A DNA stretch of 64,000 bases from Entomortierella parvispora E1425 (Eukaryota > Fungi > Mortierellomycota): NCBI GenBank assembly GCA_020891255.1, contig BQFW01000008.1, positions 1 to 64,000 of the forward strand. Reading direction: 5' to 3'. Below, piece by piece: positions 55,678 to 64,000 of this stretch (position 1 is its first letter; every line of letters begins with the position of its first letter). The notes beneath the pieces were generated by a model that worked only from the letters and a program-made list of their open reading frames with translations, was not told the origin of the DNA and did not search any database. The position numbers and the translations under genes were made by a program.

Positions 55678-57082
55678 AGGAGAGGCCCTTGGCTCCCTCA
55701 CTCTGTTTGTTATATATTTCGATGGGTACAGGTGTGCTTCCTACGGAGGCACATCCCATGGGCCGCAGATACCAACGTCGACGTCTGTCACCTGGCCCTA
55801 AACACATCATGATACCTTGCTGATGCGAAGAAGCAATCGCCCTCGTCGACGTGAACAAACATCCGATATTTGAAAAAATATCAAATAAAAAATTCTGTAC
55901 ATTATAAACTATGCGAGGTATTTTATTTTTTATCGCGGATCTCATCTGTGCCCAGCTGGCTCAGCCCAATCTCTCCCCCCCCCCCTTCGCCCAAACTCGA
56001 GCGAGAGGGAACACGCTTCTTTTGCTTTGTCTTTTTTTGACTTCAATGTCGGATCTCTTTTGATTTCAGCTCCCCCCTCATCTCTGATTTCATCTCTCCC
56101 ATTCGCGCATTCTGTTCAAAGCTCATTGATCGTTCCACCGGCCGTAAATCAGCCTGTAAGTTGATGTCCCTACCGTCTCATCTCCTGCCGGATCTCACTC
56201 TGGTTGCCTGCATTATGATCTCTCCGCCAGTCTCGGGAAACAGGCTCTCCGGCGCCCAGCTTGTCTTCTCCATGAGCAGACCTGTTGCCAAGAGAACTGG
56301 TGGAATGGGACACAGGCCAAAGATGCGACAGCCGACTTTTTTTTTGTTCTTCAGACACAAAAGACACAAAAGACACACACCACACCACCGTTCTCTCAAA
56401 CGCCGAGCAATATAATGTGCTGTCGTCTTCTGTTCAGGGTCAAGGCTCGGCTTTTTCATTATTGTCATCTTGAATGGCCCTGCTCACTTTCTTCTCTTGT
56501 GTCAGACATCAGCCGTCTTCTGTTGTTGGACCCGGAGGAGGAGTATAAGCCCAGCTCTGTCCTCCCCATTCTATATTTTCCTCTTCCCTATTCCCTGTGT
56601 TGTTTTCCCTTCTTCATTGTCTGTGTCCCTTCCCCCTTCCCTTCCGGTATAATTTTCTTTCGCCCAATCCCAATTGTTGTGCGTGCTTCAAAGATCGCTT
56701 TTCTTTCTTCCCGCGCGCCTCCCTTTTTCTCTGGCAAGGTCCTGCTTTGTACCCCCGTCTCTGACTTGTTTGTCGTCCCACGCCCCTGCTGGTTGAACTG
56801 TGCCCGCCCATCATCCCAAAGAGACATCTCCCTCTCTCTCCTCCCTTCGAGCGGACCCAGTCTCTGTCCCAAAGGACGAGCCCAAATTCAACCGCGTCAC
56901 AGCAACGCCCTGGCCATCTGGCCGTCTCATTGTCCTCACGTTCATCACCCTTGCTCGCTTCTCCAGCACACAGTTGACCTTTGACAAACTTTCTGCGGGA
57001 CTCGTTTGGCGATCCTCTTCTCCACATTGACTGTCCGTCCCCTTGATATCTTGATATACTACCATAGTCACTGACAACAACG

Positions 57083-57634
57083 ATGACTCGATACCCCAGC
57101 ACGCCACTGCGTACAGGCGATCCACTGCTGCAACGCCAGGACCTGCAACAGGAGCAGCAATTGCAACAACAACAACAACAAACATGTCCCATCATCTCGC
57201 TCGCGCTGTCCCGCTTCAGCCACACCGACTGCACCGCCAGCCTTGTGTTCTCTCTTCAGGAAGAGGATCCCAATAAGATTGACCCTCTTGACGCCACCGC
57301 GACCGCGACGGCAGCTAGCTCACTTGCACCGTGGAACTCGATCTACATTCCCAAGCATTACCGGGTGCCGATTCCGGGTCAGCGACAATCGTCTCCAGGT
57401 ACGCATGAAGCCAATAGAATGAATGAGTTCATGGAATGAGAGAAAGATCCTCGTCGTTCTTTTGCACCTTTCTCGTTTCTTGCTTTCCCTTCTGTCTCTG
57501 CCTTGTATCTTTTTTGTCAAGCACAGACACGCAGACAGACAGGCAGGCATGGGTGGACGACAACCCGCGTCTTGTTCGAACGAACACGACGGGTGCACCT
57601 GCACCCATCCATATACATGCCTGGACACACACAG

Positions 57635-57669
<35 letters not shown>

Positions 57670-60600
57670 AGAAGGAAGAAGAAGAGAGGACACACAAAGA
57701 AAAACCAAAAACTGAGGCAAAGTCAGCCACTCACTCAGTCCGTCCGTCTGTCAGTGGTCTTCCCTTCTTCCCTTCTGCCCCCTCTCTCGCCCACTTTCGG
57801 CGCAGCAATCAAAATCCGCTCCTTCCGCTCGCTCGCTCGCTCGTTCCTTTTCTCTCTCCCTCCCTCCCTGTTTTCTGATCAAGAAAAGGGCTGCGAATCC
57901 CGAATCCCGAATCCGCTTCCCTTCTTCCCTCTTTCCTTCTTCTTTGTTCCTCTCCTCCTTCCCTTCTCTGGCTGGCTGGCTGTTCAATCCATCCATCCGC
58001 TCTTCAATCCCTTCATTCTTCTCTTCATTTCTTCATTTCTTCATTCTTCCATCTCGCCCACCTTGGTCCTGATCCATCCTCGACAGACTGACCTTCACGC
58101 ACTCGCCTCCTTCCCTCCCTCCCTCCTGTCTCCCTTCCTTCGCTTCATTGTCGCCACCGGCCCCCGCCCCCTCTCCTGAGGCTACTGTTTTATCCGGCGA
58201 CTTTCTGCCAGTGTAATCATCATTATCATCGTCATCCCATTCTTCCTCATACCATACCGTCTTTATCGTCTGCCTTAGGCGCAGTCCGCTCTCCCCGCCC
58301 AATCGCCATCTTCATTTTCATATCTCTTTGTCCATCCGCCCATTTTTAGGCTTTGTTGGCCTGCCCATCGTCCTCTCAATTGCTCCTTTCTTTTTCCTTC
58401 TTTTCTTTTCTGTCTCTCTCTCCTCTCTTGCCATCAATGCTTATAGTCGTCTTGCACTGGCGCGCACTCTTTTCTCCCCTCTCTAACGCTTCTGTTCTCT
58501 TTCCTCCTTGTTTTGCCCCACAGGCGAGTGTGACCTCGTTCTCAAGATCTTCCCTCGTATCAACCTTCCCTCTCAGGACTCGGAATCAACTGCTCGTTCC
58601 CAAGACCTCGCTGGTCCCTGCAACAAGTGCAAGGTACAGTTCCCTTTTCTAGTCTTTTCTGACCCTTTGATCGAGCCTCTTTTCTTTTGACTGACCTATT
58701 TGTTGTCCTCCAGACTAGAGATATCTTCCAAATCGAAGGTCCCGATCCAGCTGTACCTTCACCGCAGCGACTCTTCTTCTCGGCTGGCGAGATCCGATTG
58801 ACGTTCAGGATCTGCTGTCCTCCCTCTCACCACTCCAGGTTCCAAATCGACGAAGGATATATGTAAGCTCCAACGGGTCATCCATTCCTCGTATCACAGT
58901 CCTTCTCCCACACTGAAAACATGCTGACAATGGTATTTCTCGGCTGAATAGTCTGACGTTTCAGTTGCACCACGGCAAGCGCATCCTTATGTCCAAAACG
59001 GTCAAGAAAGTAGGCCCCGGCATGGCTCCAGAAGCAATCCCCTTGGATCCCTCCCATCTTGCGACACCTTTGAACTCTACTCGTGCGCCAAAGCGCAAAC
59101 CCTCTTCTGAACCCAACAGACCAGAGTCAGACAACACAGCCTTGCCACGCAAGCGGTCCACAGTCATGTCGTTGGCCAATCTCATCACCGACGCCCCGTC
59201 TCTCCCCTCCTCTCCCTCCCCTCAAACTGAAGGGATCATCACTCCCTCTGTCACCACGACGGATCCATCTTCACCTACCGCCGTTGTTCCTCTCTCACCA
59301 AAATCTCTTGAGCGGGAAAATACAGACACGGATGTTCACCGGCCCAGGAAGAACAGTCCTTCGTACGATGATCACACTCCTGCGTCCTGGGTCTACGGCA
59401 AGGACTCCAGATCGGGCTCTGAGCGCACCGAGGACAGTAATGCCCAAAAGGCTTCAATGCCTACCGCAGCTGCGCCCAAACAAGCCAAGAAACGACAGGA
59501 GCCTCACGAGTTGAGCGAACTTGGAATTGGTCAGCGAGCCTCCGCCAACCTTCATGCTGCGTATGTTAGTAGCCAGTTGAAGGAGCGATCAAAGTCGAAT
59601 GGTACCACGGTGCCCTCCGTTGATAATACCGCAAAGACAAAGGCCTCAACCAAGCCAAAGCCGTCGCATGCTTGCCCTGAACCGGATTGCGACAAGAGCT
59701 TTTCGCGCCTGTTCAATCTGCGGTCGCACATGCGGACCCATTCCAAGGCACGGCCCTTTGTCTGTGCTTCCTGCAACTTTGCCTTCTCAAGACGACATGA
59801 CCGGGACCGTCACGCAAAGAAGCACTTGTCCGAGAAGCCTTACAAGTGTATTGTTTGCGAGGCTACCTTTGTACGCCAAGATGCTCTGGTGAGACATTTG
59901 CGTATGGATGGCGTGCAAAACACCTGCATGGCAGCTATGGAGCAACGGGCAATGCAGCTCGGCGAGAACGGAAATGGATACATGCTCGCTGCGACACAGC
60001 AAGTTCATGATGAGCAAGAGCAGGAAGATCGGGATGCAGACGAAAGACAGTTGGCAGCCAAATCTGCTATGGACATTTCCAACAACCGGAAACCCGTCAA
60101 GGGTGCAGCCGCTGGGCGCAACACGGACAGTGAAGTCAAGGACGATATTACAAAGAGCCACTCTTTACAGGACCAAAAGTCCGCCGATGCTCTTTTGACC
60201 CTGGAGCGATCGACCGCACAACCGTCATCCTCTCGCTCATCGACTCCCCCAAAGGCCGGAAAGGGCTTGATCAAGAATGTCGATATGCAAGGTCCAGGTC
60301 AGGTCAAATCAGAGGACGACCAGCAGGTTAAAGGCGAGTACGCTGGTCATTCGGGCGACCAAGGCTCGAACAACAACCCGGGAGAGGAGCACTACGACAG
60401 CGCACCCTACAACTCGACGACATCGCCTTCACGCTCGTTTTATCCCAGTCCATCCCTTTCTCACTCGCGTTCCCATTCCCAATCACAATTGCACCCTCCA
60501 ACAACCGAGTACGCACGCCATGAGCCGCACCAACAGCATTACTATCATTACCCCGATCCGTACCAGCATCCCTACCAGCAGCGCCCCCAGCATCCCCATC

Positions 60601-61070
60601 CTTACAGTCATCCAGACCAATCTCAGCAGCAATTTTACCACCATCCACAGGCGAACCATGGTGCGTACTACGACATGGGGCCAGACTATCCTCATCCAAC
60701 GCCGCCAGCACATGTTTATCTGGGCCCCCCTGGCTCCAAGCATTCACACCCATATCCGCCAACACCAAACCACTCCTACGGAGGGCAGTCGCAGCAGTAT
60801 TCCTATCCAGAGTCCGGTGCACCGCATCAGTACCAGGGACCGCCCCAGGGCTATGCAGGTCAAGGCCATGAAAACAGCAGGGAGGCAATGTATCAATCGT
60901 ATGGTTCCTCCGAAGGAAACCCATATGATCGGCATCGCCACTCAGAGGACGGCCCCGAGTCTTCGCACAATACCGGCCGGCCAACGGAAACTGACGAGGA
61001 ACACGCATCGGACAAGACTGTTTATGATGCAGCCATGGGACTCTTGACCATCCAAAGAGCACATTGGTAG
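57083..61070 (+). CDS. C2H2 zinc-finger transcription factor with an additional N-terminal Cys/His beta-rich domain; join(57083..57398,58524..58633,58714..58862,58952..61070), ~897 aa
   Basis: Fingers CPEPDC...HMRTH, CASC...HAKKH, CIVC...RH. Three GT-AG introns with matching phases (1,0,2). The start codon is tentative. Confidence 0.8.
57638..57667. repeat. (CA)n microsatellite, ~15 units, intronic
   Basis: Directly visible. Confidence 0.95.
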
Positions 61071-61282
61071 AAAATCACATTGAGCTGGAAAAAAAAACTA
61101 GCTTGGTTACTGTCATTGGCGCTTTGCTATCCTTTTTTGCGACAACCCTTCGGTTTTGGTCGTCATTGTACCATAGAATTATTATAAATATAAAAAAAAA
61201 CTTGTCAAGGAAAAGAGAAGCTGATTGTCCCCTGAATATCTTTGGAAACATTTATGGTACAACTATTCTATGCTTCTATGCT

Positions 61283-62479
61283 TTAGTAGCAGACAGCGGC
61301 CATCCAGTCTTTGACGGCCTCCATGTCCTTGTTCTCAGCAGAACACTCGATAAACTCGACCTCGTTCTCGAGATCCTGAAAGGTGAAGTCTTGTCCTTCA
61401 AAACCAAGAAACACGTTCTCGTTGCCATCAGCATCCTGGGTATCCAATGCAGCCGTCCTTGTCTGACGGAGCTTGTTGCTATTGAAATCATCAAAGGAAA
61501 CGTTGAGTATCGGTCGCAGTGGGAAAATAAAATGACGGCATGGAATTCTCGGCCATGTCCCTTGAACCCTTACATTTCTGCCTCCAATAATGACTGGATA
61601 CGCTCCTTCTTGAAGGAAGTGATAAGATCCGACTTGTTGCAGGCAATGAGGATAGGCAACTTTTCATTCTGAGCAAACCTGTTGGCGAGGATGTCATAGA
61701 GGTACCTATCAGATGCAAACGGATAAGGGGATCATTAGTCACAGGAATAAAACAGCATCTTGCACGCACATGATTATCAACATAGATCTGTCTTACTCTG
61801 CCAAGAGTCGAGTCTGACGGGCAACGGTGGCGCTGTCCACCACAAAAACAACAGCGCGGGCGATAGGCATGAACTCTGAAAACTTGAAGCGGAGACGCTC
61901 ATGTCCAGGGATGTCGACGATGTGAAGAGGCGCCTAGATCATTTGATATCAGTCCAATATGTTGGTTCAAACTGTCCGGAAGAAAGTATGCATGTATACA
62001 GGATTGCCACGCCTCGGAGTCCTGGCCTTGCAGTTGATAGTTTACCTTTCCGGGTACCAACTCGACATCAGCCTCATTCTCCTTGATAGATGTCACAGTG
62101 TCGACAGACTTTCCATAGTTGATCTAGAATGGAAGCAAGAAGATGAGTTTGACTGGCTCTGTCATCATCGCTGTCGTCTTTTTGTCGATCCTATATCACT
62201 GCAGAGTTGTCTGTACCAAGTAGTGGATGGTAGTCTTTCCTGCAAAGGGTAATCCTGTGATGAGAACAGTGTTCTTTGAGCCCTTCTTTGGTCCCAGCAG
62301 TGTTTTTGCTATTGAAGACAACGGAAAGAACATGTGAGCTTGGAATGAACAATGAAATGAACGATTGACGCATGAACAACAAGACAGGGGAGGGACTGAT
62401 CCCGAACGACGGTGTTACCAGCCAAGCCAATGATGACCAAGACAAGGGCGATCAAGACCGCATAGATGGCAGTATGCAT
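61283..62479 (-). CDS. SRPRB: Signal recognition particle receptor beta subunit (multi-exon)
   Basis: N-terminal TM, GLPFAGKTT (P-loop), IVDIPGHERLR, VFVVDS, LIACNKSDL. Confidence 0.93.
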
Positions 62480-62782
62480 GGTGAAGGTGATGATAATGAA
62501 GGGAGGGAGAGAAGGAAGGAAGGAAGGAAGGATGAGGATGAGAGAGAGAACCAGCAGGAAAGAACAAGAAAGAAAGTCTGTTTCTGTGCGACCCTCCAAG
62601 GACGGACGGGACAGACACACAGACAGAACACACAGACACTTCCACGCCGCTGATTCGTCGCTGATGAAACGCGGTCACCGTTCGCTGGCTCTGCTCCTTC
62701 GCCCTTGTTCTTTTCCTTCCTTTTGCCTGGTCTCTTTTGTCCATCCCCTCTCATCCAACAAACAACTCATCTCTCCAGACAA

Positions 62783-64000
62783 ATGGCACAACCGGAACGC
62801 CGACGTCCCGCAGGACAAGAGGACAACGGGACTGCCGTCGCTGCAGACGGACAGGCTGCACCCGCCGCCCCTCGCCGCCAACAAGGACAACAGCAGCAAC
62901 AACAATCGACCTTTGGACAGACTGTCATGCAGATGCTCACTCGAGCCATGATGGCCTATGCCATCATGACCTTCTTCAACGGAGGTACAATGTCGACATC
63001 AAGATTGTCTCGATTGGATGCAGGAGAGTAGATGCAACTTGTAACTCAACCTAACGGACTCATTGCTGGTATCTCCTTTTTGTTTTTTTGGTCGACTAGG
63101 CTTCAGTGGCAAGAACAACGCTCCTCCTCCCAACCCAGAGTCTATCATCACCACGCAAACTGGCCCTGATGGAGCTGTTCAGCAGATCGTCACCTCTGTC
63201 CCCGAACCCGCCAAGCTGTTCCCATTCTGGCAGCCCAGCACCAAAGCTGTAAGTCAGTATCATTTGTTCAGTTTGCGCTTTCTCTGATCTGCAGATCTGT
63301 GATGGTCTGGGCCTATTCTAACATCTCATTTTCTGCTTCAGGACCTCTTTGTCTATCTCTCTGAGGACTATGAATTCAAGGACTTTGAGGATAAAAAAAG
63401 CTTGGTCTGGCATGCCGACAACATCGAACTGGGCGATTGGAACGAGGATCGTGTTGTGGATCTGACTGTTGAGCCCTCCAAGGCAAGTTTTTGAGTTTTG
63501 TGATGTTGTACGATTGCAGCGAACGATACACCGATCGCCAACACGCAACGACTCGTTCTTTTGCTCACATTTGTCTTTCTCTTCTTTTCTTTCTTTTTTG
63601 ATGCATACGCGCGTACCGTCACTTCTGTTGGGGGATTCTTATTCGACCAAAACAGCACGTTCAACATAATGGAACTCTCTACGCCCATATCTACTTTGCC
63701 AGACACCCCGTGAACATCAATCCCGCCTCACCCAACTTCAGCGTCGACGATCGTGTGTACCAAAGAAAGAGTAAGCATCGGATGGTCTTCAGCAAGATCA
63801 AAACTGACATGCAGATGGGTCATGAGTTCATGATATTAACCCAAGTTTCTCATTCCCTGATAGTGCTGACGCGTTACTACCCCAAGAAGAGAGAAGTCAA
63901 GGTTAAGAAGCTTGTTGGTGGAAAGCACGATGAAGCTGAAGTTGAAAAGCCTGCAGAGGAGGAAGAGGTAACACATGGTCATTTTTTTTTCTTTGTGTGG
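62783..64000 (+). CDS. CLPTM1: CLPTM1-like membrane protein, 5' part (truncated by window end)
   Basis: Spliced segments DLFVYLSE, LVWHADNIELGDW, VQHNGTLYAHIYF, LTRYYPKKREVKVKKLVGG. Confidence 0.88.

Follow-up and report, generated by a model that had tools for sequence, protein, structure and literature searches.

A 64,000-nucleotide stretch of Entomortierella parvispora E1425 (assembly GCA_020891255.1, contig BQFW01000008.1, positions 1 to 64,000), hereafter the window, was analysed for one gene on its forward strand, EMPS_05674, which encodes three C2H2 zinc fingers and, ahead of them, an N-terminal domain of about 180 residues. The locus is one four-exon gene (Table 1). Direct reading of positions 56500-60500 showed that all exon junctions were canonical and in phase. 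The spliced product was the same, residue for residue, as the 897-amino-acid public protein GJJ73316.1 ("hypothetical protein EMPS_05674", Entomortierella parvispora), which a word search with exon 4 also returned at 100% identity. The ATG at 57083 is the first possible start because an in-frame TAG stands at 57065-57067. A preliminary description of this stretch had claimed that small exons outside the list of open reading frames (ORFs) splice in phase to the zinc-finger exon, and this was borne out, as the peptides it quoted were all present and in phase. Since the product equals a public protein, the small exons are missing only from the plain ORF list and not from public annotation. For all searches the exons were used one by one, and the joined product was used only in the form of GJJ73316.1.

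Orthologues sharing the N-terminal region were found in about 20 Mortierellaceae, belonging to Mortierella, Linnemannia, Podila, Dissophora, Haplosporangium, Gryganskiella, Lobosporangium and Lunasporangiospora, while no paralogue was found in the E. parvispora genome, where the gene is single-copy. With GJJ73316.1 as reference, mean identity to the orthologues was 98% in the fingers, 69% in the domain (residues ~35-215), 48% in the linker and 24% in the C-terminal half. When mapped to the genome, the three intron positions were the same in eight other Mortierellaceae loci, with Podila epicladia, which does not have intron 3, as the exception. In addition, a 2,937-nt contig (L014) of run SRR6256850, from the Linnemannia cluster, carried a complete collinear ORF without introns and ended in sequencing adapter; it was read as a spliced transcript confirming all three junctions in a relative.

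These results bear on whether the gene model could be wrong, with exons 1-3 belonging to another transcript or being non-coding and the real protein starting inside the zinc-finger exon. At 1,125 nt, intron 1 of E. parvispora is far longer than is usual in this fungal family (85-685 nt in eight relatives), and the transcript support comes from the Linnemannia relative, not from E. parvispora itself, both of which would suit such an error. However, the junctions are canonical and in phase, the peptides of the three small exons show 60-70% identity across some 20 species and the intron positions agree, and the intron-less contig of the relative joins the small exons to the finger region. A wrong gene model is therefore very improbable and already close to refuted.

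The three fingers scored 42.5 bits with PF00096 (cut-off 25.2) and 45.5 bits with PF13465 (cut-off 40), which by profile assigns the protein to the C2H2 zinc-finger family (PF00096). Their matches among PDB sequences were Zif268, WT1, KLF4 and CTCF, with E-values from 1e-13 to 1e-43. Basic clusters resembling nuclear-localisation signals were also present in the protein.

Table 1. Positions in the window of the exons, introns and protein features of EMPS_05674.
Feature	Positions	Strand	Length (nt)	Content	Basis or conservation
Exon 1	57083..57398	+		Codons 1-105 and first base of codon 106 (GJJ73316.1 residues 1-106); Gln-rich N-terminus, first strands of the domain, near-invariant loop around IPKHYRVPIPGQRQSSPG	Direct reading; conserved in orthologues
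Intron 1	57399..58523	+	1,125	GTACGC...CACAG; CTAAC branch site at ~58484, ~35 nt upstream of the 3' end	
Exon 2	58524..58633	+	110	Residues 106-142; first two bases complete Gly106; ends in phase 0; strand DLVLKIFPR, variable loop, then invariant C138-x2-C141	
Intron 2	58634..58713	+	80	GTACAG...TCCAG; branch site ACTGAC at 58690	Position kept in 8 relatives
Exon 3	58714..58862	+	149	Residues 143-191 and two bases of codon 192; three predicted strands, then C176-C177-P-P-S-H181-H182	
Intron 3	58863..58951	+	89	GTAAGC...AATAG; branch site GCTGAC at 58923	Lost in Podila epicladia
Exon 4	58952..61070	+		Initial T completes Ile192; through residue 897 to the stop codon; last two strands of the domain, linker, three C2H2 fingers, low-complexity C-terminal half, conserved terminal helix	
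N-terminal Cys/His domain (predicted beta-sandwich)	57185..59021	+		Residues ~35-215, with three introns inside; predicted p53/Grainyhead-CP2-like fold	AlphaFold2 models, fold searches
First putative zinc-ligand pair	58619..58630	+		Codons of C138-N-K-C141	21/21 sequences; orthologous pair at a short helix in model 2
Second putative ligand group	58813..58833	+		Codons of C176-C177-P-P-S-H181-H182	C177, H181 and H182 in 20/20 sequences; C176 in 19/20
Conserved stretch before the fingers	59493..59597	+		Residues 373-407; predicted helix 385-407 (model 1)	Invariant alignment block
Three classical C2H2 zinc fingers	59667..59903	+		Residues 431-509	Pfam PF00096, PF13465; 98% identical across the family
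Conserved C-terminal amphipathic helix	61011..61061	+		Residues 879-895	Alignment and model

Sequence relatives and predicted fold of the N-terminal domain

Searches with the domain returned its own family. Pfam searches with each exon, with 21 full-length orthologues (E up to 1) and with the domain alone (E up to 10) found only the C2H2 fingers and neither P53 nor CP2. A search of the whole E. parvispora genome with PF00870 gave no match, and phmmer and profile searches against PDB sequences gave no match to p53 or to any other solved structure; the only near-match, to an HDAC "RPPGHH" motif, was a chance look-alike (E 1.6). The ESM Atlas yielded no usable result and no matching cluster, whether queried by features or with its own model, which was poor. 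Word searches with the domain region, the sole coverage of its first half (proteins of 493-1,570 amino acids), found only Mortierellaceae and no orthologue outside that family. For the second half, a 72-position profile (alignment A5) was built from the Podila exon without intron 3 and exon pieces from eight species. Among 1.84 billion representative proteins it retrieved four Mortierellaceae orthologues, one unspliced fragment (P0087) and one BRC-repeat protein (P0086), the last of which was spurious. A p53-like factor of fungi or of Mortierella was sought in the literature, as was run SRR6256850, with no relevant result, and no paper describing the family was found. The domain is real and family-restricted, and defines a new family of conserved domains, so far counting about 20 members, which annotation now leaves as 'hypothetical'. 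As far as these searches see, the gene appears to be restricted to Mortierellaceae.

The structure was predicted with AlphaFold2 on the orthologue alignment, once with GJJ73316.1 (P0001) first (model 1) and once with a Linnemannia exigua protein (P0019) first (model 2). Both models predicted a beta-sandwich at residues ~35-215. Its core consisted of nine strands, identically ordered in the two models, long helices were absent, and a tenth short strand was predicted after residue 215. In model 1, ten-residue blocks with strands had mean predicted local distance difference test (pLDDT) values of ~50-87; in model 2, the block means over the domain were 52-88 and mostly >70. Elsewhere the protein was largely disordered in the models.

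Foldseek against the PDB placed p53-family chains in the lead for model 2, with p73 first (E 3.7e-3, probability 0.99, template modelling (TM) score 0.42) and with Cep-1 and p63 at TM 0.46, while for model 1 p53-family chains held most of ranks 3-11. VIA-align searches against 48,161 representative chains gave, for model 1, Z scores of 6.6 for Grhl2, 6.6, 6.5 and 6.5 for p53, 6.6 for CP2c and 6.0 for Cep-1, with the next match at 5.4. For model 2 they gave 7.2, 7.0 and 7.0 for p53, 6.9 for Cep-1, 6.5 for Grhl2 and 6.3 for CP2c, followed by a beta-galactosidase immunoglobulin domain at 6.0; Z stayed below 8 throughout, which limits the fold assignment. Overall, with two aligners and two models, the best structural matches were the DNA-binding domains of the p53 family and then those of Grainyhead/CP2. 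CudA, STAT and RUNX were not among the top 50 structural matches, and no search was aimed at any of them.

Structure prediction followed by fold search, as the preliminary description had proposed, thus gave a beta-sandwich with the p53 family as its best matches. The p53/CudA-like immunoglobulin fold suggested there was upheld in part: the sandwich was predicted in both models and p53-family chains were matched best, but the Foldseek E-values were above 0.001 and the Pfam P53 and CP2 models were unmatched. From the two models, a fold of the p53/Grainyhead type is probable.

Putative zinc site and comparison with p53

The p53 strands are named here by their established numbering (S1-S10). In p53, zinc is held by C176 and H179 in loop L2 and by C238 and C242 in loop L3, which ties the two large loops together, and DNA is contacted by R248 in L3, R273, and R280 in the C-terminal helix (PMC8901663). 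Model 2 placed the C-x2-C pair where a short helix (141-145) begins, within the long loop that follows strand four, much as C176/H179 stand at helix H1 in L2. The C-x3-H group started two residues past a strand end, as C238 follows S8 at the C238/C242 pair of L3. The strand reading ILTF began nine residues after the His, which equals the spacing from C242 to S9, and two long antiparallel strands closed the fungal domain, as S9 and S10 do in p53. The predicted strand order would match that of the p53/p63/p73/Cep-1 core (PF00870).

The invariant pairs C138-x2-C141 and C177-x3-H181 therefore stood at topologically matching places in the predicted secondary structure, although the ligand types are swapped, with C-x2-C and C-x3-H in the fungal domain and C-x2-H and C-x3-C in p53. 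The order of strand, C-x2-C, strand with C-x3-H, and ILTF, which had been likened to p53 with exchanged Cys and His, held against the predicted elements of the models. The counts for C177, H181 and H182 cover the 20 sequences in which that stretch is modelled. In addition, C108 was kept in 20 of the 21 sequences. Compared with p53, the fungal domain has one fewer short strand between the two loops; the fungal protein also has no equivalents of Arg248, Arg273 and Arg280 and no tetramerisation domain, and is fused to C2H2 fingers.

By these positions, one zinc ion would tie together two loops of the sandwich, held on one side by C138 and C141, in the long loop following strand four, and on the other by C177 and H181 or H182, directly after strand seven, in the manner in which C176/H179 and C238/C242 of p53 hold L2 and L3. 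From the modelled loop positions we infer that the four ligand residues would cluster in space; zinc binding through these two loops is somewhat more likely than not, and the domain is probably a zinc-stabilised p53/Grainyhead-like fold.

Several observations weigh against this interpretation. No Foldseek match to the PDB with either model reached E ≤ 0.001, and a sequence or profile link to p53 or CP2 was looked for with Pfam, PDB sequences and the domain hidden Markov model (HMM) and none was found, so the domain is not placed in PF00870 by sequence profile. Both models came from shallow alignments of 21-22 close orthologues, and the C2H2 fingers were poorly modelled (pLDDT <50), which is a warning about alignment depth. 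Neither model had a helix after the last strand, where p53 has its DNA-contact helix H2, and the L3-like loop carried no conserved basic residue or arginine, position 184 being R, S, T, D, G, A or H. A loop-sheet-helix arrangement with conserved Arg contacts was accordingly not seen, and the absence of the contact helix and of the basic L3 residue indicates that the p53 mode of DNA contact is not conserved.

The same absence of the contact helix and arginines would suit a generic immunoglobulin-like beta-sandwich, perhaps with structural zinc or disulfides, which would serve protein contact, dimerisation or regulation and leave DNA untouched, its likeness to p53 being only the common arrangement of such sandwiches. 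Many unrelated immunoglobulin-like domains scored 5-6 with VIA-align. The most conserved stretch (residues ~82-106), which is nearly invariant, was predicted as a low-confidence loop (pLDDT <50 at 94-101), and strand-for-strand mapping would put it far from the DNA surface of p53. However, the six best chains in two unbiased searches with two models were all p53, Cep-1, Grainyhead or CP2 DNA-binding domains, and both invariant Cys/His pairs occupied the two loop positions that hold zinc in p53. We consider a generic sandwich unlikely, though it is the strongest of the alternatives.

Grainyhead/CP2 and the likely role of the domain

The Grainyhead/CP2 family (LSF; PF04516; PDB 5mr7 and 8y7v) is present in fungi, including this genome, where two canonical genes were located outside the window at G000:C2:339620-340704 (+) and G000:C11:1996522-1997127 (-). 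PF04516 scored 83, 78, 69 and 27 bits across the exons at those two loci and had no match at the EMPS_05674 locus. The presence of two ordinary CP2/Grainyhead genes makes a CP2-derived origin a serious rival. The domain would then be a fast-evolving offshoot of the fungal Grainyhead/CP2 DNA-binding domain that was fused to C2H2 fingers in the Mortierellaceae ancestor, with a secondary zinc site and a convergent likeness to p53. Consistent with such an origin, Grhl2 and CP2c scored as well as p53 with model 1 and had the most residues aligned (131-136). One survey of p53 homologues reports none beyond Holozoa and places fungi in the "non-p53 world" (PMC6981761); the p53 family is reported only from animals and their unicellular relatives, and the present domain is fungal. 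Against a CP2 origin, the CP2 profile does not place the domain in this family, the domain HMM found nothing at the two CP2 loci of the genome (E >1), and model 2 scored p53 above Grainyhead/CP2 (7.2 compared to 6.3-6.5). The helices of Grainyhead/CP2 were not predicted in the fungal domain. In Grainyhead, the counterpart of p53 loop L3 lies in the minor groove of DNA and coordinates no zinc (PMC5829564). An offshoot of CP2 was therefore considered quite improbable, well below a generic sandwich.

The putative zinc-bridged p53/Grainyhead-like fold was also compared with other known systems. The EBF1 DNA-binding domain (PDB 3mln) had a lower structural score, and the zinc knuckle of EBF is one contiguous motif, not two metal-bridged loops. 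Three tandem classical C2H2 fingers mid-way in a long, largely disordered protein, as here, are found in Crz1 and Swi5/Ace2, and the finger helices appear similar in sequence. Crz1 and Swi5/Ace2 are not known to have a folded N-terminal beta domain such as the one predicted in this factor, and the fungal proteins grouped with the p53-like fold (Grainyhead/CP2 and Ndt80) are not known to have the zinc bridge of p53. A domain family with a p53/Grainyhead-like predicted fold and a p53-like putative zinc site, fused to C2H2 fingers, would be new.

The gene would encode a nuclear transcription factor of Mortierellaceae in which the three C2H2 fingers provide ordinary sequence-specific DNA binding. 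The N-terminal all-beta domain of ~180 residues would form an immunoglobulin-like sandwich of p53/Grainyhead-CP2 topology, and its most likely role would be to act beside the fingers as a second module that binds DNA or a partner in a zinc-dependent way. DNA is the favoured target of this module, since all top structural relatives are DNA-binding domains, and the lack of the p53 contact elements makes a partner possible. From the structural matches, direct DNA binding by the domain itself is conceivable but has somewhat less than an even chance. Taken as a whole, the predicted p53/Grainyhead-like fold with a putative zinc bridge, acting as a second binding module in a C2H2 factor, is the favoured explanation by a modest preference.

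A closer kinship would make the domain a true, very distant relative of the p53 core that kept the zinc bridge, with an ancestor that predates the split of fungi and animals or reached fungi by transfer. This is improbable; if it holds, the Mortierellaceae would retain such a relative, joined to C2H2 fingers in a regulator with two DNA-reading parts. If the fold and the zinc loops are true, the origin of this design would be older or the case would be one of clear convergence, and the domain would offer a small, stable non-animal model for how zinc shapes the fold. Pairing the domain with three C2H2 fingers in a single protein would give an uncommon type of DNA reader with two modules, which could be tested directly because Mortierella alpina is transformable.

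Annotation variants and minor sequence features

The region 1-245 of the transcript contig L014 contained an in-frame ATG upstream of the called start that adds 29 codons and matches the longer annotated N-termini of two orthologues (P0010 and P0011). Such an extension is excluded in E. parvispora by the in-frame TAG upstream of its start. In Podila epicladia (L011:1563-1883), the lack of intron 3 places residues 133-239 on a single exon, and its close relative Haplosporangium bisporale (L013) retains the intron. After the KRKxSS motif (residues ~240-250), a further intron was annotated in eight relatives (L002, L003 and L008-L013) and was absent from the E. parvispora gene, which reads straight through there with no extra residues, so this looks like variation of intron presence and absence within the family.

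Intron 1 of E. parvispora contained a (CA)n run near 57636-57668 and long CT-rich tracts, and its comparison with eight orthologous introns showed simple repeats only and no conserved element.

Several public models of the orthologues contained annotation errors. The Gryganskiella model (among P0002, P0085 and P0090) skips 31 residues of exon 3. A Mortierella claussenii model named 'AP-2 mu' (1,271 amino acids) appears to be a fusion of this factor with the neighbouring gene. A Linnemannia model named 'TRM10, partial' (1,301 amino acids) likewise appears to be a fusion with a neighbour and causes TRM10 proteins to be grouped with it at the 90% cluster level. Across the final 2.9 kb of the window (61070-64000), no obvious long TRM10 ORF was seen, and no search was aimed at TRM10; in four relatives (L003, L008, L009 and L012) a TRM10 tRNA methyltransferase gene adjoins downstream. 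Finally, an ORF of 256 amino acids in another frame (+) and one of 244 amino acids on the opposite strand (-) overlapped the low-complexity C-terminal half of exon 4 at 60277-61062, and both are most likely by-products of biased composition and not genes.

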